A DNA stretch of 64,000 nucleotides from Parasitella parasitica NRRL 2501 (lineage: Eukaryota; Fungi; Mucoromycota): NCBI GenBank assembly GCA_025201805.1, contig MU619288.1, positions 1 to 64,000 of the forward strand, given 5' to 3'. This document shows, in pieces, positions 5,756-55,966 of this stretch; within the stretch, counting starts at the first letter, position 1, and the number at the start of each line of letters is the position of its first letter. A program made the translations under genes and the position numbers. The notes beneath the pieces are model-generated. The model ran no database searches. It was not told the DNA's origin and saw nothing but the letters and a program-made list of their open reading frames with translations.

Positions 5756-6087
5756 TATGGTGAGTATTTTAGTGGGTTAAAGACAAAATGTACACAGTGT
5801 GTGTCCAAGAGCCTTTTATATTGTTTATTTTTTTGTTCTGTTTTTCTATAATAATGACGCTTTCTTGGATTTTCTGCCCCTTCCAATAGCGGGTTGAACC
5901 GATCTTATTGTTTAGATTTCACTGACCACCATCGCTATTTAACGTTTATTTATGACAAGGAAACATGCAAACATGCGCAAAATGAACTACGAATAATGAG
6001 CTATTATCTTTTTTGAATAAATAGCGCAGTGTTTATGTACCACAGCGAACGATCTTCTTGCTTGTTCCACCACCCCTTTTTAACGTT

Positions 6088-8600
6088 TCATTTCAAAGAA
6101 AGCACTTTGACCACACCTTTGCTATTTGCTGCTACTAGTTTCATAGTACCCTTTTTCCAGCAGACTGAGCTAATGAATATGCTTTCGTCCTCATGTTCCT
6201 AAGGACCGTGTTCAATGTACAGTTTGTCGAATAAAAATATCCAGAATCTTACATTACCAGGAAACGAGTATGTCGCAATAGGTTTGTCTGCATTTTTGTG
6301 GTACGTAAAAACGGTGTTGCATTCACTGCCGCAGGAAATCCAATCTCCATCTGTGCTTAAACCAACAAAATTCTTCTCATTTTGATGTCCTTCGTAGCTT
6401 CGTTTGCATGTTCTCGATTCTCTGTCCCATAATTTTAATGTACTGTCTGTGGATCTATAATCCCTGGTCAGCACCGATATCAACGTGTATTATACAGACT
6501 ATACTTGCGCAGACACAATCTCATCATCATTCAGCCATTTAACATACGACACTGCTTTCTTGTGGCCAATGAATCGGCTCATTGGATGCGCTGGATATCT
6601 CAAGTCATAACAAGAGATGTGGTGATCTAGAACACACAATCTTAGATCACAGAAAAGGGATGTCTCGTTTCCAAGACTTACCTGCACTACCGACGGCTAA
6701 ATAGTAGCTGTTGTTTGGAGCAAACTTAGCGCAGCATACGTTTCCTTTTTGTTCCAATGTGTGAACTGCTTTATTTTGCGATAATGACCAAACTCTCACT
6801 GTACTATCATCACTGCCACTTGCCAATAGCGTGGGATTGGTTTCACAATAGTCTACACTCCAGGCACGTTTTGTGTGTTCGCTAAACGTGTGCACCTTGC
6901 GCCCCGTGGAGCAATCCCAAATATCAATGAGGCCTTCATAATCGGAGGATGCAAGCTGTGATTTTATGTACGGCGACCAAGATAAACAACTAACTTTATG
7001 TCCACACATGAGGACCCGTAAAGGGTAATGGCCAGTCGAATATCCCATCATATTGAAATCAAACAGCTTGATTTCCTTGGTTACGCCTCCCACTGCAACC
7101 AGTTCTTGATCCCGATCGAAGCCTATTGTAGAGACTATAGAGCTGATTTGTCGATTGCCATCAGTGTAGCTAATCGTGTCTATAAGATCGAATTGGTTGT
7201 AGCGAGTCAATTCGTAGATCGAGGTGGATAATTCAGTCAATAGCTTTCTTCCTGCCAGACACAAGATTGGCTTTTGAGATTACACAATATTGGTCGAAAA
7301 TTACCATAGACTTACGTTTATTCATATTGTCATTTGGCGATAATAATGAATGATACATGCTGCGTAGATCGTCAAATCTATCATTCAGGCGGTGGTACAA
7401 AGGCGGCGACTGTTCATCTTGTATTTGGTAATGCCGACGTTCTGATTCGACTAGTTCGTCTTTTATAACACCTTCGTTCTCAACGCTGCCTCTTACGTCG
7501 TCCTTATCGTCAAGTTCGTCGTCTGTGCTTAATATCTTGACAAAAAAAAACCCCCATTAATTGTACGAACCCTGGCTGTAAACTGGCACTTACCAACTTT
7601 CGCTTTCTATGGTCGTGTGGGGGGCTGCTGTCTTGATAGACCAAATTCTGAAGGTCTGAATTTATGCAGTTGTTTTCATTCAGCAAGGAGCGAACAGTCT
7701 AGCAGAGGTTGTCAGAAATTCACAGCTGCTAAACTTCCACGAAGCCAATTACTGTTTGGTTCTTTTTCTCTAATTTCTCTAAAAATGCCACGAGCAGTTC
7801 TTGCTTGATCCTGGTTTCATCCCTTTCGATTCTTTGTCGCTGTGAAAGAGCTGTTTCAAACACTGATTTCAAATCTAGAGTGGAAAAAATAGCACGATTT
7901 TTTTTATTTTTTATTAATAAGACACAATCTCACCCGTGGTGAATTCACTCACCTTGGCAAGAGAGTGAATTGGCCAGCGTATTTGCGATTGAATCGTTGC
8001 TTTTATTGCTTGCTATGATGAGTTTTTCTATCGGGTCAAGATGCTGATTGACAGGTTGACTTTCTTTAATAGATCGAATTCGGTATGCTGCGAGTTTGTT
8101 TACTACGGCGCATTCAATATCCATAATCAGTAAGAATAACACACACACACACACGCACACACAAGAACGTAACCAACACTTACATTGAAAATTAGGGAAA
8201 ATATTGGTCTTGTTCAATGCTGAGCGGCATATTGGACAATCAGATTGATTGTCCAAGTGGAGCGAGAGGCATCCATGGCTTGGCTTGTTTTAGCGTCGTA
8301 TTTCCATAAATATCAAGTAACAAGAGAAAGAGCTTACCAAAACGAATGGCCACAATGGGTTACATATACCTCCTTCATCAGATCCTGACATATTGGGCTT
8401 GTGAATAAGTGTATTAGCCCTATTTCCAAGACAATGCATACATCAAGTTACCATGCAAGCTCCTCGTCTATCTTTCCTGTTTCCTCTGGCTTCTCGGTTT
8501 GCTGACGCGAGCCACCCAGCAGTGATAGGATAGATGGCCAGCGGTTCTGCTGACTATCGGATTCGGTTCTGTCAGTGTCTTCACCGCCGTCAGAAGACAT
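6088..8600 (-). CDS. COP1: COP1/RFWD2-like E3 ubiquitin ligase (RING-HC, coiled coil, WD40), multi-exon
   Basis: RING CPIC..CGHSFC..C..CPIC; coiled-coil exon at 7753-7876; COP1-type WD40 signatures IVSTIGFDRD.ELVAVGGVTKEIKLFDF, LASSDYEG, EHTKRAWSVD, LASGSDD, GHKKAVSYVK, GHQNEKNFVGL, CGSE, AANSKG.VKVL. Confidence 0.92.
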
Positions 8601-43740: not shown

Positions 43741-44179
43741 TTAGCCTGTCTTTTAAGAACTCTCTGTGTACCCTACTCCTCATTTGAAAAATGTAGGTCT
43801 CACTTGGGATCTTGATAAATATGATCAGGTAACGGGCTCCATGAATCAACCAGATGTCGTAATGAACGAAACCTTTGATATTACAGCAACGAATGGACAA
43901 ATACATCCAACTAGCTGCTTTGATGTAATTTGAGTTTTAGGGATTACAGGCCACTAGACAGCAACAACTGCCCAGAGTACCCGGAAGGCATTGGTTGATG
44001 CTCATTGTTTTTTTTTGCTTATCCCGGCGTTTTATCAAGTGAAAAAGAGGTGGTCCGAAAAAATTTGAAAAAGGTCCGAAAACCAAGTAAAAACACTTTC
44101 CTTCCCCCATCTTTTCAAATAAGAAACCCCCTTCTCTTTATTGCATTTTTTTTTTTTTTCAACATTGCGATATTTACCC

Positions 44180-45613
44180 ATGTCTTTATTACGCTTATTC
44201 ACAACTCATAAAGTCTTTAAACCTAATCACATCAACTCTATCAGAAGCTTTTCGGCTGCTCCCGGTAAATTCGAGATTTTTTTTTNNNNNNNNNNNNNNN
44301 NNNNNNNNNNNNNNNNNNNNNNNNNNNNNNNNNNNNNNNNNNNNNNNNNNNNNNNNNNNNNNNNNNNNNNNNNNNNNNNNNNNNNNNNNNNNNNNNNNNN
44401 NNNNNNNNNNNNNNNNNNNNNNNNNNNNNNNNNNNNNNNNNNNNNNNNNNNNNNNNNNNNNNNNNNNNNNNNNNNNNNNNNNNNNNNNNNNNNNNNNNNN
44501 NNNNNNNNNNNNNNNNNNNNNNNNNNNNNNNNNNNNNNNNNNNNNNNNNNNNNNNNNNNNNNNNNNNNNNNNNNNNNNNNNNNNNNNNNNNNNNNNNNNN
44601 NNNNNNNNNNNNNNNNNNNNNNNNNNNNNNNNNNNNNNNNNNNNNNNNNNNNNNNNNNNNNNNNNNNNNNNNNNNNNNNNNNNNNNNNNNNNNNNNNNNN
44701 NNNNNNNNNNNNNNNNNNNNNNNNNNNNNNNNNNNNNNNNNNNNNNNNNNNNNNNNNNNNNNNNNNNNNNNNNNNNNNNNNNNNNNNNNNNNNNNNNNNN
44801 NNNNNNNNNNNNNNNNNNNNNNNNNNNNNNNNNNNNNNNNNNNNNNNNNNNNNNNNNNNNNNNNNNNNNNNNNNNNNNNNNNNNNNNNNNNNNNNNNNNN
44901 NNNNNNNNNNNNNNNNNNNNNNNNNNNNNNNNNNNNNNNNNNNNNNNNNNNNNNNNNNNNNNNNNNNNNNNNNNNNNNNNNNNNNNNNNNNNNNNNNNNN
45001 NNNNNNNNNNNNNNNNNNNNNNNNNNNNNNNNNNNNNNNNNNNNNNNNNNNNNNNNNNNNNNNNNNNNNNNNNNNNNNNNNNNNNNNNNNNNNNNNNNNN
45101 NNNNNNNNNNNNNNNNNNNNNNNNNNNNNNNNNNNNNNNNNNNNNNNNNNNNNNNNNNNNTGCTAATGGCACTAAAAAAAGACAAATCTTTGTCCAAGCA
45201 GATGAAAACCAATAGATCAACTTTAAAGGAATAAATGTACATGAATATGATTACTTTGGTTAAAACTTTTCAACTTCTTAGGTATCCACACATACCATTA
45301 GATCCAGTTCTTCCTTTACATTTGATTGGTGTGGTCATCTTTTGGAAACAGATACATATATCACATTGATGGTGCCTGGTGCAAGGCACAACTGCGAACG
45401 TTTAACTCGGCTATGTCAAATTGATGTGATGTTGAACAGTACAAGAAAGTAATAGGTTCTAGGTATTTTGCATTAAGCAATAAATTCTGTATCGATTATA
45501 GGGCCAAGTATTTCTTTCAGGTATTAAATCTTGGTTTTTTTATTCAACAGTAAACATTGCGTTCAATCATAGATAACAAAGCAGCTTTACACAGCTTCAA
45601 GCAGCATTCACTA
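44180..45613 (+). CDS. Partial gene or genes spanning the large N gap: a mitochondrial-presequence-like first exon and unassigned 3' exons
   Basis: MSLLRLFTTHKVFKPNHINSIRSFSAAP|gtaaat before the gap. After the gap, open GT-AG-bounded exons (45283-45448 VSTHTIRS..FDWCGHLLETD..) end in TAA at about 45613. Confidence 0.45.
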
Positions 45614-45907
45614 ATTTCGATTCGGTGTGCCATTGTTGAACATGCTGCTCGCATATCACTTGTATGTAAAACATTAAATTTCATGAAATCAAACGATTTA
45701 ATAACTGTGCTTATACTTTTTGAACTATCGGAATAATATTAATAAATAAAAAAAAAAGACAATGATAGTATATTATTCGTAAATTCATTATAGATCTGCT
45801 TTGTTTTTTGTTTTGTTTTGCTTGTCATACATTTCAACGAGAAGAAAGAGAAAATAAAGTATATATATAAGGGGGGGAGCGTGTTGGAAAGATAATGAAA
45901 AAGCGAC

Positions 45908-47709
45908 CTAATGGATGATTTGAAGGCGAGAATTACTGACTTGCCAGACATCTAAACCAGCGTATTCACGAACAGCTTCATCCCATTGAGCTTCAGTATA
46001 ACCTTTGGAAGCAACGCGACGTTTAATTGTAGATAAAGCCAAGCTGCTCTCACCACGTTCCTGAGCCATTTCTCTTACGATATTAAATATGCCAGTCATG
46101 GGAGATGTATCATGACGACCGCTACGTCTTTGGCTGTCGTCGTTCAACGACGATTTAGAAACGTCAATCAATCTCAATGCTTCGTCTACATCTCTAGGTT
46201 CTACGACATCTGCTAAGCGAATACGAGCCAAAGCCTGGGCCATACGGATTATACCCAACAAAGTACGCGCTGAAGCATAGGTGAACTGTTGCTGGCGGTC
46301 CTCATCGAGTTTATACTGTCGTCTTAATCCAACATAAGCACTTGTAACATATTCTGAGACTTCTGATGTGAGAACAGGGCGTTTGGTTCTGGCATGAGCA
46401 ACATAATGTCGGATCATATGAGGCTCTAGCGCATTGAAATCCATTCGAGGTGGCTTGTTGTGTGTATGAACATAAGTGACATGCTCAGCCAGAAGACGAT
46501 CCATCTCATCTGAAGGCTTGTCCAACATCAGATAGAGGATATCAAAACGAGAGAGCAAGGCAGCAGGCAAGTTGATATTTTGTGTAGGAGAAATGCGGGT
46601 ATTATAACGTCCATACAGAGGATTAGCAGCAGCCAGAATGGAAGCACGGGCATTCAGTGTAGTGTTGATGCCAGCCTTTGAAATACTGATAGTTTGTTGT
46701 TCCATGACTTCGTGAATAGCGGTTCTATCGGAATCGTCCATCTTGTCAAATTCATCGATACAACAGATGCCGTTATCTGCTAGAACCAAAGCACCACCCT
46801 CCAAAATCATTTCGTCGGTAACGGGCTCTCTCATCACAGCAGCTGTCAAACCCACCCCAGAAGAACCACGGCCGGTTGTATAAACACCACGAGGAGCCAC
46901 TTTGGCAATGAACTTGAGCAACTGAGATTTGGCGACACCAGGATCACCCATCAAACAAACGTTGATGTCACCACGGATCTTCATACCGTCACCGACCGTC
47001 TTGTTGACACCACCTACCAGCAAGAGCAACAATACTTTCTTGACGTCGTCATGGCCGTAAATTTCAGGGGCAATACTACGAGCCAAACGACTATAGGCAT
47101 TGGAATCTTGTTTGAGTTGATCGATAACCTCTTGATCGGCAGGAGTAATTTCGATTTCATCGTATTGTTTTTTGAGACGGTGCACATATTGCACCTCTAA
47201 ATAGGTGTCTGTCAAAAGTCCAGCACGGAGAGCTCTGAAACCTGTGTACGGCATAGGCAGGAAGATGCCTGTGACATTGGCGACATCGCCAGGAGTTAGC
47301 TGACGGCAGGCAGCACCATACATGTGCAGCGTCATAGTACGAGGGATATGGCCAACAGGTACTTGGTCAGTTAATTCCTGCAGCTTTATTTCCTGGAAGG
47401 CCAGAAATTTAGAAGCTCGAGTTTGCATGTATAATCTGCCCTTGGTCTGGTTCTTTCTGCACTCTTCAGAAATACATTCAGTCAAAGGTGTGAACTGTCT
47501 CTGTTTGATCTCCTGGAAGATTTCGTAGCCGCAAGAATCGCAACTGTAGGTGTTGACTTGAAGGAAAGGCTTGACATCAGAGACACGGGTAATGATACCA
47601 CGCACGGTGACAAGGTTGCCCAATGAAGACCCCTTTATTTCACGAACAGCGAATCCAGTGGCGGTGCGTAATGGCTTGAAGAAGACCTCGCTATAGGCAA
47701 CTGTTAGTA

Positions 47710-47774
<65 letters not shown>

Positions 47775-48387
47775 GCATATTTACTATCGACGTGTTAACG
47801 AAGGGGGGAAATGCTCCTCAGCGTCATTTGTTCTGTTGGCGTCACGGTTGCTTCTTTGACGGATGATAACATCAAGCACACTGTCCTTGTAACTCAAGTC
47901 GGCATTTGTAGGCGTCTTTTCCTTGCAGATATCATCAATGACGGAGCAGGCGATATCAATGTAGTGTTTGGTATTTCGGATGATGCGTGCTACGATGCCA
48001 GTGTCGCTGTCGTAAAACTACAGGCTGCTTGTTAGATGACTGAGTGTACGCGCATGTCGCTACTCTGAAACAAACCTGTGCCAAATCATCTAATTCAATG
48101 ACAACAACAGATTGCTCTCTATCGACTACATTTTGCTAGATGAACGATTAATGTGTGCTGTGTTTCTGTCTAAGTGCGCATATGTACCAGTTTGCAGTCG
48201 TATTTTGCACTGATTGCATTTTCGCCTGTTGCACTAGTTACAGTCTCCTTGAAATTTCTAAAGAAATCGCTGAGAGAAACTAAATGATTTGCGTTAATTC
48301 TTTTTTCGTCAGTAGGGCTTAGGGGATAATACCCTTGTCTGCGTCATAGTCGACATTGGTAAGGTTTACAGGTAAAAGAGCTGCCAT
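45908..48387 (-). CDS. MCM7: DNA replication licensing factor MCM7, multi-exon
   Basis: Zn finger CDSCG..C...[45 protein letters not shown]. Start MAALLPV at 48387. Confidence 0.97.
47716..47773 (+). repeat. Poly-T tract of about 58 nt in an MCM7 intron
   Basis: Homopolymer read directly from the sequence. Confidence 0.9.
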
Positions 48388-48964
48388 TTTTTGTTAACGG
48401 AAACAAGCAAAGGAAAGAAAAGGGACTCTTTTGCTCGGCAAAATTTTGTGTTCCTTTTATTCAGGATCGCGTCCACAGTCGCGAGGGGGGAAAAAAATTT
48501 CTCCAAGAGCAAGATTCCATTGGACATGTGGATTCAGTGTTTGGTTGCAATCAAGCAAAAATCATTAGGATTAAGCCATGTACACAGCATGAGTTTCTGG
48601 CGTGTCAATGTTCAAAGGGAACGTGGGCAGTTGCAGCAATTTCGTCCAATATTTACTTGATCAATCACTCGGTCAGCAAGCCCAGTTGTTCTGTCAAATC
48701 AAAGAGGTTTGATATGCAGATTGCAAGACATGTACGCATCGCTTTGGTCACGTATACTGTGCTGGTATTAAGAGTAAAAAGAGGCGAGTTTTTTTATTAT
48801 TATTATTCTTGTTCTTATAGTTGATGTTGCTGTTTTTGCTTGGCATGGCCTCTATTTTGTAAACTCAAGCAAGAGGTTTACCAACAACATGCAAACTATG
48901 AAAGACAGCAACGAGGATCCTGATTTTGTATATAAATCTCCAACACTATATCCCTGGTTTGAGA

Positions 48965-49021
<57 letters not shown>

Positions 49022-49780
49022 NNNNNNNNNNTTTTGTACATAGACGATGAGCAAGTTGGTTGGCATTTGGTGACGAATCAGACTTACAAGCTTTTTTGTG
49101 GGGTATTGAGAGTCGTAATTTGTGTAAATTGTAGTTGTTGTGTGGGCATCATTCGCCGCAAGCTGTGAAAATCGATGAGTAAATAATAGCAGGTTACCGT
49201 ATATTTTCTCTCACGTTAGATTTTACAGTTTCTATAATGCTTGCCAAGGTCATTTTTTTATTTTTTGAAAAAGGAGCGTCAAGAGGGATGAAAAAATAAA
49301 AATTAAAAATAAATAACAGAGTCTGCACCCCCTCTAGTCAACTTGAATATGCGACATCATGTGAAGAACAGACCCAGGGATAAATGCTTTAAGCTTATGA
49401 TGTGATGTAGAATAAATTGACACGCCTGCACACGGTACTTTATCAAGAGATACCGCTCAATTAATGCTACATTGCTCTCTGGAGGGGCTGCAGGGTTTGG
49501 AAAGCGAGAAAACAGCATACACAAATATGAACACTTTAAAATAGTTGTAACTCAATCGGCTGAAATTCCAGATAGTAGTAAGTTTTATTCATTTTTTGTT
49601 ACAGATTGTCAAGAAACAGCATGTTGACTGAATCATGTGTATTGCATAGTAGACGGCATATTTAATACATATAAACAAATTTCATAAATGTAGCATAAAG
49701 ATTACAAGTAAAGTATGAAAAAGTAAGGAATGGAATTGCAAAATGGGGAATAACGTGTAAATGTTTTTCAAGTCAAATCC

Positions 49781-51171
49781 CTAATAACGTCGATAATTGT
49801 GGTTTTGATAATATCCATTATTTGACCCTCTTCCATGGTCATCACCCTCTTCTTCTTCCTCGTCGTCGTCTTCGTGTTCACCATCTTCTTGGACTCTTTT
49901 GTAACTATTACTGGGCATCACTAGATAGTCTTTGTTTAGCAATGAAGAGGGAAAACTGGTGGTGGCGGGAAGGTCTGTAGAGGTGTATGGTCTTTCACCC
50001 ACAAGTTGCTCGATTTTGGCCTCGCTCTTTTCCACAACCAATGCCTTTAGCCATTTAATCTCTCTTTCTAACTCATGCACTCTCTGCTCCATACGCTGAG
50101 CTTTCTCTGTCATTTCAGAAGCGGTATTTTGCAGTGCTTGTTCACGCATCTTCTTTTTAATGCGGAACCGTGCTGATGCCGCTGTGTTGCGACGTCTTTT
50201 ATCATCCCTGCTTAACGGCTGCGATGTGCGACTACTGTTGCTGCCGATGCTGCTATAACTCTGAGCCCCATCGCCAATGACAGGCACATCGTCATCATTG
50301 TTATCATCGCCGTCCTCTTGTTGTGCATCTCTATCGAGCTCATCTTCGAATGTTAGTGTCTGTTTCTTGGTCGTCTTGTTTTTACTTTTAGGGTGCTTTA
50401 ACCCAGATAGTTTGTTCTGCTCCCTGTTGTGCTGAGACAGTATTCGTGAATCTAAGGGCTGTTTATCGTCTTTGAATCGAAACTTCTGCGCATTGTTCTT
50501 TCCTTTACTGTTAGAAGCGACAGCAGCTTTGGGTGATGCGAACAAGGACGTGGTTTCAAATTTATCCGCTTGTGCACTGTAGCTGCCAAGAGGCTGTTCA
50601 AAATAATTGTGGTGGAAATTCACAACAGGTGAAGTTGGCGTTGAATTGGCAGGTGTGCTACTACCCGAGTAAAGCGATTGAAGTGATCTCTGATGCTGTT
50701 TCAGCGATCCTGGCTCTATGAAGTACACAACAACATTATGCTCATGTCCGTACTTGTGCAAGAAAATGTATCTTTACCATGTGCTAAAAGCAATGAGCCA
50801 TCATTTGATGTTTGCTGCTGGTTGAATAACAAGGAGGCATAATTGCGATCGTTTAAATACTGATCTGTACTGTATTCCTGATGATGGCTATTAGAAATAT
50901 TCAAGCTGTCAAAGAAGGGCGGGTCTGCATTGGTAACAATTGGCGTGGCTGCAGTTGATGCTGTGGTCGTGGTGCTTGGCTCATTGAGCTTCATCTGTGC
51001 TGTAGTATAAAAGCTCAATTCTTGTTGTAGTGAACCGTCGTTTATCATTGGAACAGGTGTCATGATTTGATTCAATACGTCCAAATGAGACCATGTTGAT
51101 CCTCCTGCTGCTGTGGTATTAATAGATGTCGGTCGGTTCTTTCCGCTTCCATTACTCTTTAGCTTGGCCAT
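49781..51171 (-). CDS. metR: bZIP transcription factor of the CYS-3/MetR/Zip1 sulfur-regulator family; 2 exons, intron 50716-50778
   Basis: Family-diagnostic basic region DKRRRNTAASARFRIKKKMREQAL..LEREIKWLKALVVEK. A GTAAAG..CATAG intron joins the two overlapping ORFs in frame. Confidence 0.85.
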
Positions 51172-51402
51172 TTAAGCATCAACAACCAATAAAAAAAAAC
51201 AAAAAAAAAACAAAAAAAAAAANNNNNNNNNNAAAAAAAAACAAAAAAAAAACAAAAAAAAAAAGAAAAGAGAAAGCTGCTTTTATTTGCTCTGCATACG
51301 GTATATATAAACAGCTTATTGTAGATCAGTTACAATATAAAGAGCATCGTAAACAGAATGTTACACCAAATGTCGCAATAAATGCGAGATAAATGCTATA
51401 AA

Positions 51403-52283
51403 TCACGTCATTCGTACAGTTCTGGCTTTACATCCAAAATCCCAAATCTTCACTTCCCTATCATCTGAAGCTAACAAGATCTTACCATCACTTAAAGAAG
51501 CTAATGTTAATGGTCCATTATGGCCTTCCGAAGCATACAGACAGGTTGCAGTTTCTGTGGCTATCCCAAACAAAACTCCCATGTGTTTGTCGAGGAGTCA
51601 GAAATAATGCAAAGCTTATCAAAAGTAAGCTCCCAAATTCCTTGAACATGACCAAGCATCATTTTTAAACATGCGCCTGTAGTTGTATTCCACATTTTGA
51701 TGTTATTATCCAGCGTGTTTGAGATGATGATAGGGTCAGATGCTTCTAATGTTGCTTTTGCGGATGAGAATGGCTAAACGCATTTGTATTGTAGATCAAG
51801 TATTTATTTGTATTTGTTATGGATGCCCAGTCTGAGCGTTGTAATAAAACGGGTACAATAGTAGCAATATTAGTAACAGCATTTGTTGTAGAAGAAGCCG
51901 TTGACGTTGGTAGCAATCAGTCCTTATTAGACGATGATGTACCGGCAGTCGATGAATGAGGTGATGACTGATTTTCCAGCTTGCTTCGATGAGCACTGAG
52001 GCGATTTGTAGAGTCATGTGGACTAGAGAGTGTGCCTTGAGCTTGGCCAACATGACCACAATAGACTTGGACACAGGAGAGACTTTAAAAATCTCAGTAA
52101 CGTTGATTTCTGATAATGCAGCTTTTTTTTTTTTTTTTTTTTTTGAGAATGGCTTGGCCATGTTACAAAGGAAATTGAGAATTGAAGCAAGCAACATGTT
52201 GATACTACCTCCTACATTATGAGGGTTTTCGTTCGACCGATGCAGCTGTAAATGGTGACAATATGTGAGATGTTGCTACTTTG
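51403..52283 (-). pseudogene. sconB: Frameshifted, internally deleted relic of a Met30/SCON-2/SconB/Pof1 F-box WD40 gene
   Basis: Reconstructed across frameshifts and stops: QSSNISHI/SPFTAASVERK/TLIM*EVVSTCCLLQFS (pre-F-box region); *DF*SLSCVQVYCGHVGQAQ; IISNTLDNNIKMWNTTTGACLKMMLGHVQGIWELTFDKLCIISDS..VWD/TATCLYASEGHNGPL..LSDGKILLASDDREVKIWDF. Confidence 0.8.
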
Positions 52284-52589
52284 TAGTAGCTAATTAGCAA
52301 AATAATGCGTATTCCTACTAAATCTCACATCTTGTATTTTTTGTGCATTGATTACCTCAATTTTAAACCAAGTCTCGTTGATGCCTGTAGCATTCACATG
52401 TTTAAAGCTATAAAAAAAAAAAAAAAAAAAAAAAGGATGAGCAGTAGGTAACATTTGTAGCAGAATTTCATATATAGGCAAAGATAAACAACGACATGTC
52501 GAGATAACTAAAGGAGTTGATCACTTGTATCTTTGTGTTATGAATCCAAATGTTGCAAAGAATCAATGACATGGTATTTTATTGTCATT

Positions 52590-53847
52590 TTACAAGAACG
52601 AGCTTTTTCCGTAACCAAACTTGGAACCTAGTTCAGCCGATTTTCTCAAGAACTCGTCTTTGTCCTTTTTGTTAATTTTTTTATAGCTGACCAAGTCTTT
52701 TTCACGATCAAATGCACGTTTGGTGACATCTTCCTCTGCACTAAGGCCATTTTGTCTTCTATCTTTTTTCTTCTTTTGCTGATGCATCTCCAACAGTGTT
52801 AATGGCCTTGTTTGCATCTAGTGGAAGAGAGTAAAATGAATTAGACTAGGATTAAACTTGGTATATAAACTGAAACCTACGTTATACTGTTGAACGTTGC
52901 GATGTCTCTCTATATCCAATTCAGATGGTCCGCCAGTATCTTCAATGGGCGCCTTCCTCTTCCCTAAACGTTGTTCTTCTAATCGGCGTTGTTTTTCAGC
53001 GGGTGTCTCAGTCCAACCAGAAGAGTCAAGGTCTTCAGGGGCCATAGTTTTGTTTGTGAATTGTCGAGATTTACCAGAACTAGCATTTTTTAGATAATCA
53101 ACTTCGGGAGGCACCAACATCCATGCAGGCCGTTCAACTTTGTTTTTGTCTGCTTCTTTCTACAATGCCTTGGTCAGTATTTTGGTGTTTTTTTTTTTTT
53201 TTTTTATTTACCTGCTCCATTGCTTCCTTTGTTGAACGGGCACGCTCTTCAATGGCTTGAATTGCAGAATATTTGGCCTCTTCTTCCACGTTATAGTCCT
53301 TTGGTAACGCTGGTCCAACTAGAAAATCATCGTCATCGGTAGAGGAAGGTATTGGTCCTGATGGGAGGCTGGGACCAACAGGTCTGCGCCTTCTACCGAC
53401 TGCAGGACGCTGATTTGGTTGTTGTTGTTGTTTCTGACGCTGCTCCAAAAGATCTGGAGGAAGTGCTGGCGCAAAGTCATTTGGATCCTCTTCCTCTGTG
53501 GATTTCTTTTGATCCACAATGTGCTGGGGGATCTGAGGGCCTGCTTCTATATCTTCGTCATCAGAGATAGCGATTTCGTCAGTATTTATGGTGGATGTAG
53601 ATTTCTTTTGTTCAAAAATATGCTGAGGTATCTGAGGGCCTAAGGATAGAGGCATTTGAGGACCAATTGCCTCAGAATCAACCTCCTCACTGTTACTTTG
53701 CCTCTTTTTTTCTAACAAATGTGCAGGGATCTGAGGACCAGCAGTGGGCATGTGTTCCTCTTCTTCATCGTCAGAATGAAAAGTGGTGACCTCAGCTTCC
53801 TTTTGGGGTTTCTTCAATACAGCTTCGGGTATAGTAGGCCCTATCAT
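52590..53847 (-). CDS. GPALPP1: GPALPP-motif-containing protein (DUF3752), 3 exons
   Basis: Repeated GPQIP/APALPP/GPALP motifs; RPAWMLVPP, SGWTETPAEK, LLEMHQ, RAFDREKDL, LGSKFGYG. Confidence 0.85.
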
Positions 53848-54008: not shown

Positions 54009-55966
54009 ATGGCACCTCGAATATCACAAGCAATTTTAGTCATCTCAGGTGCGCTTACTGGACTCGCAGCTGTTGCAGCATTGTCTTATTTCAGAAATAA
54101 GCAAGACGCCAATTCGAATGGGTCCTCATCATCTTCGACAGTCCACAACAACAACAATAACAACAACAACAGCAGCACATCGACAAATGTAGCAACCGAA
54201 AGCACATCCGCAAACAATCGACCAAATAGACTGCGACGCTCTCGCACAGTTCGTAGACGACGCAACAATAACAACCGAAACCCCGTAGAAAACAGCGATA
54301 TAGATCCAAGCGCTCTCATGTCAGAAACTGAAGAAGACGCTGATAATCGAAAAATGCTATCATTATTCAAAGAGTGGGGAGAAGATGACAATCGAAATCT
54401 ATTAAACTTGCTACATGCTATATCTGAAAATCAATCACGCAAAGGTATAGAAAAAGAAGAAAAGCTAGGCTATGCTTTAAAACTAAAACTGCACATTTAG
54501 AAGGATTCATTCATCGTAAGTTGCGAGCGTTTGTCCAATTTTACGGCATAACAAAAAACTGTCTACAATAGGGGGTATTACTTGCAATAAATGCAACATG
54601 TCACCTATTCGAGGCGTTCGATACAAGTGTGCGAATTGTGTAGACTTTGATCTGTGTGAAATGTGTGAAGGTACAAATAGTCATGTCAATACGCATGTAT
54701 TCTTGAAAATACGGATTCCCATTCCACCACTTGCGAATCCGAGAAGTGCATTGCTACCAGCATTTTATCCTGGAAAATACCATAATAAACCCCCAATATC
54801 AGCAGAGAAATATCGAGAGTTGCAACACACATCACATTGTAAGTTTTTTTTTTTTTTTTTTTTNNNNNNNNNNTGGGCATGTAACAATGCAGATATTAAA
54901 TACTTTTTCATACAGTTGATCAAGTGGAATTAGAGGCTTTATATGAGCAGTTTAAATCGCTTTCGACGGTGGATAAAGACGAGGGTGGCATAGACAGAGA
55001 GACATTTGAGCAGTGTTTAGGACCTTTGGGCTTGGAAAAAAACCTCATTACAGAACGAATATTTGCATTTTTTGATCAGGATGGGGATAATATCATCAAT
55101 TTTCCCGAAATCGTAGCGGGGTTAAGCGTGCTGTGTAAAGGAAATTTGGATGAAAAGATAGGGCGTAAGTTTCTTCCATGCTAATATGTTGGGCATAACT
55201 CAAATTTTTTTTTTTTTTGCAAATAGATGCATTCAAGGGCTATGATTTAGATGAAGATGGGTATATTTCTCGAGACGAACTATATCGAATGTACAAATCG
55301 TATTTTTACCTATCAATGGAGTTGGTTAGAGATGTTGTGAGTGCTATGGAGGATGAGATGATGGACACTTTTGAGTTTTCTGCATCTCAGCCAGTAAGCG
55401 CTGCATTCAACGTAGCCATGCCATCAACGCCCACTGACAGGAATTCAAGTGAAGATGAGGATGATGACAGCGAAGAAGAAGCGACTGGTAGTCAAAGCAA
55501 TCAATATGTGGCAGAAGCAGGGCCTTCCAATAGCAAAAAAATCAAAAAGAAGCGATATCCGTTAAAAGAAGATCACTTTTTACGACAGTATGCGATGGAA
55601 GCTGAACAAGCACAAGCGCTCTCTACTGCCTCGCATGCTCAGGTAGATGATATGGCAGATAATGTGTTGCGTTCAGATAGTCAGCGACTGTCAATGTCCT
55701 CAAAGTCCAACGAGTATGAAAGACCACCAGCAGCGTCGCAACTCTCGTTAGAACAGCAACAACCGCAAGGCAAAAAAGCATGGGAGGAGAAATTTCCCAT
55801 TATGGAAACCATGTCTCAAGGAGCTATCAATGAGATGGTCGACAAGACATTTAAAAGCATCCAAACGGAAAGAGAAGGATATATCAACTTTGAAGAGTTT
55901 AAGGAATGTGTTCAAAGCGATTCAAGTATTGTGAGTTGGTTTGAAGCTTTAGGCACAGTATTTTAG
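54009..55966 (+). CDS. N-terminally membrane-anchored ZZ zinc finger / EF-hand (frequenin-like) protein, multi-exon, including a 15-nt micro-exon at 54501-54515
   Basis: HRGITCNKC.MSPIRGVRYKCANCVDFDLCEMCE...H...HVFLKIRIP; EF hands DQDGDNIINFPE and DLDEDGYISRDE; hydrophobic residues 8-27. Confidence 0.88.

Follow-up and report, generated by a model that had tools for sequence, protein, structure and literature searches.

Parasitella parasitica is a mucoralean mycoparasite. In the stretch of its DNA analysed here (64,000 nucleotides of strain NRRL 2501, MU619288.1, positions 1 to 64,000, contig C52 of a 32.8-Mb eukaryotic assembly; hereafter the window), a pseudogene of a Met30/SconB-type F-box/WD40 gene lies on the minus strand directly upstream of a gene for a bZIP protein that appears to be of the CYS-3/MetR type. 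This locus is very probably the decayed member of a two-gene unit, composed of a Met30-type gene and a CYS-3-like bZIP gene, that is conserved among related fungi and has been duplicated. The conservation of the tandem across Mucorales and Umbelopsis is the new part of the finding; a literature search returned no report tying Met30 to Mucorales and none of a linkage between sconB and metR. The published circuit with which these genes are compared is a feedback loop, in which the bZIP protein turns on the F-box gene and is in turn eliminated by the F-box protein: CYS-3 is degraded via SCON-2 and itself induces scon-2 (PMC8550094).

A Met30-type pseudogene and its orthologs

The analysis confirmed a pseudogene of a Met30/SconB-type gene on the minus strand of the window at ~52392-51403, referred to below as the relic. 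Its parts, in the direction of the original gene, are the following.

52354-52392, minus strand: exon-1 remnant CYRHQRDLV (52392-52366), with two stops, one of which is the TGA at 52357-52359 replacing Arg40
52176-52282, minus strand: pre-F-box segment ISHI..FTAAS..TLIM..STCCLLQFS, in two frames and with an interrupting stop
52123-52144, minus strand: poly-A run of 22 nt, the deletion junction, with ~904 nt gone relative to the Mucor ortholog
51774-52102, minus strand: single WD-repeat remnant (..CVQVYCGHVGQAQ) and the low-complexity insert of the propeller, containing stops
51403-51773, minus strand: last WD repeats, in two frames (51773-51564 and 51558-51433) separated by a 1-nt deletion and a 9-nt insertion

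An earlier note on this DNA had described three collinear minus-strand blocks, and both three-frame translation and the order of the tblastn matches to the intact paralog on contig C6 bear this out: residues 340-374 of that paralog correspond to 52102-51998, residues 421-490 to 51773-51564, and residues 492-528 to 51543-51433, all collinear. The C-terminal WD40 repeats of the relic are also collinear with those of the family members, and the last piece is recognized by Pfam as WD40 (E 1.8e-5). The first block, which the note had taken for the Met30/SconB pre-F-box segment, aligns with the pre-F-box sequence in the upstream open frame of the C6 gene, over a frameshift and a stop. The loss of the F-box and early WD repeats, with its junction at a poly-A tract, was likewise found when the Mucor gene, a second Parasitella assembly, and the window were aligned. 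The missing ~904 nt correspond to codons ~107-425, that is, the F-box and WD repeats 1-4/5, and the poly-A run is followed by 26 unalignable bases. The relic has thus lost its F-box domain; the second Parasitella assembly has one interrupted by a stop, and the intact paralogs and orthologs retain theirs.

The span of 51403-52283 given in the note held at its 3′ end, where the original stop codon occupies 51403-51405, and had to be extended at its 5′ end. The exon-1 remnant, whose counterparts read CYRHRPDLIK in the C6 gene and CYRHSPELIK in the C17 gene, reaches 52392 and is followed by a degenerate remnant of intron 1, so the relic begins at least 110 bp upstream of the earlier limit. Read in the Mucor frame, it contains at least 7 stops and several frameshifting indels; with these lesions and the large deletion, it cannot give a Met30-type protein.

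When the whole genome was searched with the WD piece of 70 aa (51773-51564), two intact paralogs turned up, one on C6 and one on C17. When the relic was compared with 120 relatives of the C6 protein, P0078 of Mucor circinelloides was the most similar (62%, 79%, and 51% on three pieces), followed by other Mucor “copy 2” proteins; for the WD pieces, identity to P0078 is 62% over 68 aa and 79% over 42 aa, with a linked E-value of 2.4e-42. A maximum-likelihood tree of 54 rows resolved three Mucorales clades: copy 1, which includes the C6 protein, copy 2, which includes the relic, and a divergent copy 3, which includes the C17 protein. The relic groups with P0078, P0079, P0082, and P0074, with a support of 100 in the Shimodaira-Hasegawa-like approximate likelihood ratio test (SH-aLRT). 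One 15-residue piece of the relic row is in the wrong frame and inflates its branch length, but the position in the tree does not depend on this piece, as identity and synteny lead to the same placement. The synteny is orthologous in Mucor and in the second Parasitella assembly: the relic or F-box gene, then the bZIP gene, then MCM7. On these sequence comparisons, the relic is the ortholog of the intact Mucor copy 2. The third Met30-type gene (G000:C17:84841-86301; L020 841-2301, minus strand) falls in a long-branch clade with proteins of Mucor, Choanephora, and Blakeslea, and has no bZIP neighbor.

The tree was built without a named Dikarya Met30, and the Met30-type assignment draws on database names and motifs. 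Many of the relatives are named “F-box/WD-40 domain protein MET30” (JGI) and one “SconB-like” (NCBI). Fbw7/Cdc4 and beta-TrCP share with the Met30-type protein the order of an F-box followed by a WD40 propeller; in contrast to Fbw7/Cdc4, the Met30-type copies are marked by a pre-F-box CC(M)PQLS segment and a post-F-box CxKCGWGLP segment. The Protein Data Bank contains no Met30 structure, and the best match of the Met30-type protein there, Fbw7, is not decisive for the family. Separate genes on C83 and C125 encode propellers that match Fbw7 and Cdc4 in a single collinear stretch, which indicates that the Met30-type copies are not Cdc4/Fbw7 orthologs. With these distinct genes, the MET30-named closest proteins, and the full support of the copy-2 clade, a Cdc4/Fbw7 or beta-TrCP identity for the relic was rejected, and the Met30/SconB identity proposed in the note stands. 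A different WD40-repeat gene, not of the Met30 type, lies at window 6090-7200 (minus strand) and gives weak matches to the propeller of the F-box protein.

The second Parasitella assembly (GCA_000938895.1, locus L035, LN719964.1) has the same order of pseudogene, bZIP gene, and MCM7. There, the pseudogene is full-length (5852-7808) and carries at least 13 stops and at least 4 frameshifts. One stop is common to both assemblies, the change of Arg40 to TGA, and its presence in two divergent assemblies indicates an old inactivation rather than an error of assembly. DNA identity between the two assemblies is 73.4% in the relic, 74-75% in intergenic DNA, and 87.9% in MCM7; the relic is now evolving at about the intergenic rate. 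Most likely, the inactivation preceded the split of the two Parasitella lineages, and the large deletion came later, in the lineage of the window. The decay of this pair would have started with the nonsense mutation at codon 40, continued with further stops and frameshifts, and ended with the loss of ~0.9 kb at the poly-A run.

Although both assemblies are labeled Parasitella parasitica, they differ by 12% in MCM7 coding DNA and by ~26% in intergenic DNA (L035 vs window 44000-52100), which far exceeds the usual level between strains of one species. In addition, the WD remnant of the pseudogene is annotated at L035 7542-7829 as a protein-coding gene of 95 aa; this gene model is probably false.

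The F-box–bZIP tandem and the orphan bZIP gene

On C6 of the same genome, an intact Met30-type gene is followed, 755 bp downstream and on the same strand, by the bZIP gene that is the best paralog of the one in the window. An intact paralog beside a MetR paralog, which the earlier note had suggested looking for, is therefore present. In M. circinelloides, Met30 copy 2 (L025) and copy 1 (L026) are each followed by a same-strand bZIP_2 gene, 157 bp and 778 bp downstream, respectively. The same-strand tandem, F-box gene first, is also intact in Phycomyces blakesleeanus and Umbelopsis nana; the pair appears as consecutive locus tags in M. bainieri, M. flavus, and Apophysomyces ossiformis, and in many other Mucorales both proteins are encoded on contigs of equal size. 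The bZIP of the window has its ortholog next to Mucor copy 2 (59% over 290 aa, plus exon 1), and the C6 bZIP has its own next to Mucor copy 1. These orthologies parallel those of the F-box copies, which indicates that the pair was duplicated as a unit.

Outside this group, no bZIP gene was found up to 8 kb from the Met30 gene in Linnemannia and Lobosporangium, both of Mortierellomycotina, or in Basidiobolus. The bZIP loci of Endogone and Geosiphon have no Met30 neighbor, though the bZIPs queried there may be paralogs; in Jimgerdemannia, the contig stops at the gene. Within Parasitella, no Met30 remnant was detected within ~4.5 kb of the other bZIP paralogs, on C21, C205, C9, and C60. The tandem is probably at least as old as the common ancestor of Mucorales and Umbelopsidales.

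The ancestral unit would have consisted of a Met30/SconB-type gene and, 0.15-0.85 kb downstream on the same strand, a CYS-3/MetR-like bZIP gene, and would have been duplicated as a pair within Mucorales. P. parasitica would then retain pair 1 intact on C6 and the unlinked third Met30 gene intact on C17, and pair 2, in the window, would be without its F-box gene. The intact tandems of C6, of both M. circinelloides pairs, of Phycomyces, and of Umbelopsis support the suggestion of the earlier note that Mucorales carry an ancestral pair of activator and ubiquitin-ligase genes. Its suggestion that this copy lost the repressor after a duplication is similarly supported, since the relic is the copy-2 ortholog and pair 1 is intact. 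Its other proposal, that the organism has lost feedback control of the bZIP, is not supported: two intact Met30 copies remain (C6 and C17), so the F-box function has not been lost in the organism.

The bZIP gene beside the relic and the spacer between them are organized as follows.

51172-51402, no strand assigned: spacer of 231 bp between relic and bZIP gene, rich in poly-T, with an N gap at 51223-51232; likely the bZIP promoter region
50778-51171, minus strand: bZIP exon 1, 131 codons plus 1 nt, with a conserved N-terminal motif (..LQQELSFYTTAQMKLNE) at ~50980-51027
50716-50777, minus strand: 62-nt bZIP intron, bounded by minus-strand GT..AG, removed in an RNA-like contig
49781-50715, minus strand: bZIP exon 2 and stop codon, with the bZIP_2 domain at ~50042-50209

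The relic had been reported to end about 230 bp ahead of the bZIP start codon; with the ATG at 51171, the measured 231 bp agrees with this. Searches were run exon by exon, and the spliced join was checked for frame: the joined open reading frame has 442 aa and no internal stop. A contig of run X7 skips 50716-50777 with GT..AG ends, which indicates that X7 holds RNA-derived sequence and that the bZIP transcript is spliced as expected. The bZIP gene of pair 2 is intact, spliced, and expressed. Its protein is 64% identical overall, and 92% in the bZIP region, to the 438-aa protein of the second assembly.

The bZIP_2 domain is recognized with a Pfam E-value of 1.4e-11, and the basic region, DKRRRNTAASARFRIKKK, is the same as in ascomycete proteins named “Regulatory protein cys-3”. 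In addition, a common N-terminal motif, (D/E)LxxFxNxxFxxD, occurs in ascomycete cys-3-named proteins and in bZIPs of Endogonales, Geosiphon, Umbelopsis, and Mucorales. A lookup in the ESM Atlas returned generic bZIP clusters only. The identical basic region and the common motif make the CYS-3/MetR-type assignment of the note appear sound at the level of the family, among six near-equal paralogs. The motif is ELSFYTTAQMKLN in the window, where Met has taken the place of the central Phe; the position is Ile in the second assembly and still Phe in the Mucor copy-2 bZIPs. Other copy-2 bZIPs next to an intact F-box gene are likewise degenerate at this position, and no conclusion was drawn from the change. 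The C9 paralog (L023 4983-5252) contains eight copies of TTCAACAT in its 3′ end (L023 5259-5517), an array that is missing from both Met30-linked bZIP genes and from their Mucor orthologs.

By homology to SCF(Met30)-Met4 and SCON-2-CYS-3, the WD40 propeller would bind the bZIP protein and lead to its ubiquitination when sulfur is ample. The contact was modeled by complex prediction with the C6 propeller (residues 165-532) and the C6 bZIP, together with three controls, in three runs. The predicted complex scored 0.68, against 0.00 for the best of the three controls; the mark applied to this score is one that 51 of 78 solved complexes attain, compared with 2 of 108 mismatched pairs. The three runs share at least 46% of contacts, and the partner has a predicted local distance difference test (pLDDT) value of 41-42, which makes its own fold uncertain. 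The confident predicted contacts involve bZIP residues 32-61, which correspond to the conserved N-terminal motif, and are centered on two Phe residues. The model supports binding of the C6 bZIP to the C6 F-box propeller via this motif, and it places the contact on ELxxFxNxQFxxD. It is possible, and we propose it tentatively, that the tandem is an old, selected ligase-substrate pair of Mucoromycotina and that ELxxFxNxQFxxD is the docking site of the Met30 propeller. The orphan bZIP of pair 2 would then either be under the remaining Met30 paralogs or escape control.

Several observations weigh against the overall interpretation of the locus. The modeled complex is predicted with a partner that is largely disordered, and a passing score cannot single out which family member binds. 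The six Parasitella bZIP paralogs are about equally similar to cys-3-named proteins (78-102 bits), and the unlinked C21 copy is slightly the best for 3 of 5 cys-3 queries, and the main sulfur regulator may therefore be a copy other than the linked ones. A comparison of C52 (window 38-64 kb) with C6 and C17 (~±10 kb) found only the pair itself in common and no larger duplicated block, so the duplication may have involved the whole genome or a small segment. No CYS-3 site (ATGRYRYCAT or ATBRCGCCAT) occurs in the window, where 1.1 would be expected by chance; sites of this N. crassa-type consensus are also absent from the C6 and Mucor pair 1 loci, and the single matches in three other loci are uninformative. 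A role of these Mucoromycota proteins in sulfur control is one that we infer from homology.

The same evidence bears on the view that the adjacency is functionless, i.e., that the bZIP is not a substrate of the F-box protein and that gene order has been kept by slow rearrangement. The absence of CYS-3-type sites near the pairs and the equal resemblance of the six paralogs to CYS-3 both favor this view, as does the lack of linkage for Met30 copy 3 and for four bZIP paralogs. It is also favored by the separation of the genes in model Dikarya, in line with the statement of the earlier note that no linkage is known there, and seen for NCU03536 and NCU08563 in N. crassa (PMC8550094). However, the pair keeps its order and strand in Mucorales and Umbelopsis although its flanking genes vary from lineage to lineage and from one paralogous pair to the other, and the complex model is consistent with binding via a deeply conserved motif. 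We consider a functionless adjacency unlikely.

Transcription and sequence quality across the relic

A transcript contig of run X7 overlaps the relic.

51406-52112, plus strand: transcript contig (run X7) with a 58-nt intron at 51625-51682 that has GTAAGC...TAG ends on the plus strand

Given these splice ends, the transcript would run opposite to the relic and away from the bZIP gene; as the contigs give neither strand nor level, the antisense call comes from the splice signals alone. The contig begins at the border of the bZIP promoter spacer, and no RNA contig covers 51279-51405. It looks like a divergent promoter transcript. The relic might instead have been co-opted, either to act as a promoter or upstream control region for the bZIP gene or to template a regulatory antisense RNA. 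The position at which this spliced transcript begins would fit such a role, as would the better preservation of the 3′ WD part, which lies beside the bZIP gene, and the persistence of the remnant in both Parasitella lineages. On the other hand, the relic diverges at the intergenic rate (73.4% vs 74-75%), X7 is only presumed to be RNA and its contigs carry no strand or level, and divergent promoter transcripts are common and usually functionless. Co-option is thus improbable, more so than a functionless adjacency.

Concerning sequence quality, contigs from three DNA runs match window 49500-51174, 51279-52112, and 52448-52700 with zero differences, relic stops included, although these runs may derive from the source sample. 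No read-derived contig spans the poly-A junction or the N gap, which counts against our interpretation of the deletion; the contigs end at 52113-52152 and at 51175-51278, and the failure to span these places is explained by their ending at homopolymers. The 10-N gap at 51223-51232 lies inside the poly-T run of the 231-bp spacer, outside the coding sequence, so no reading frame hinges on it. The second assembly is collinear over it, with window 52084-51254 corresponding to L035 7143-7980 and window 51210-49636 to L035 7963-9535. Another 10-N gap, at 49022-49031, similarly falls within a long poly-A/T run, which suggests that both gaps reflect homopolymer-limited assembly and not missing genes; a third gap in the window, at 54864-54873, is of equal length (10 N).

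That the gene is intact in the organism and that the stops, the frameshifts, and the missing 0.9 kb are sequencing or assembly errors at homopolymers is hardly credible: the N gaps of the assembly do adjoin poly-A/T runs and the junction is unspanned, but the three DNA runs reproduce 51279-52112 exactly (with the reservation on their origin given above), the divergent second assembly is also broken and has one of its at least 13 stops in common with the window, and a search of the whole assembly with the P0078 protein and the L035 DNA of the missing part found no further copy of the F-box/WD middle. The ~0.9-kb deletion at the poly-A junction, which no contig spans, is taken as real.

Relation to known systems and significance

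SCF(Met30)/CYS-3-type circuits are textbook feedback loops whose genes are unlinked in model fungi; to our knowledge, the F-box and bZIP genes are also unlinked in yeast and Aspergillus. The locus described here resembles SCF(Met30)-Met4 of S. cerevisiae, SCON-2-CYS-3 of N. crassa, SconB-MetR of A. nidulans, and Pof1-Zip1 of S. pombe in combining a Met30-type F-box/WD40 receptor with a bZIP that has a CYS-3-type basic region, and the N-terminal motif of the Mucoromycota bZIPs is shared with ascomycete cys-3-named proteins. It differs from them in arrangement: the genes are tandem neighbors in Mucorales and Umbelopsis and were duplicated as a unit, whereas NCU03536 and NCU08563 of N. crassa lie apart. 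The Mucoromycota pair is known from sequence and prediction and, in contrast to the published circuit, no CYS-3-type DNA sites were found near it.

Gene and genome duplications with fractionation have been described for Mucorales. Like other fractionation pseudogenes, the relic is a duplicate that decays at a neutral rate by nonsense, frameshift, and deletion while its paralogs stay intact. Unlike in ordinary fractionation, the loss breaks a putative ligase-substrate pair whose bZIP partner is intact and expressed, and the same locus can be compared in a full-length but decayed form (second Parasitella assembly) and in an intact form (Mucor). The pseudogene itself is ordinary; its value lies in this dated series of three states, which comprises an intact gene in Mucor, a full-length dead gene in one Parasitella lineage, and a truncated dead gene in the window.

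That the tandem has been kept in two orders of early-diverging fungi and was duplicated as a unit suggests that a ligase and its substrate are co-regulated or co-inherited. It may also offer an entry into the sulfur regulation of Mucorales, an order that includes agents of mucormycosis and in which Mucor lusitanicus is genetically tractable. In the literature on the circuit, we found no definition of how the F-box protein recognizes CYS-3/MetR, and the predicted docking motif is directly checkable by mutation. If the prediction is true, ELxxFxNxQFxxD would be the recognition element that has so far been missing for SCON-2/SconB, and Parasitella would be a natural experiment, since one of its pairs is without the ligase gene and the orphan bZIP of that pair has an altered central Phe in the motif.

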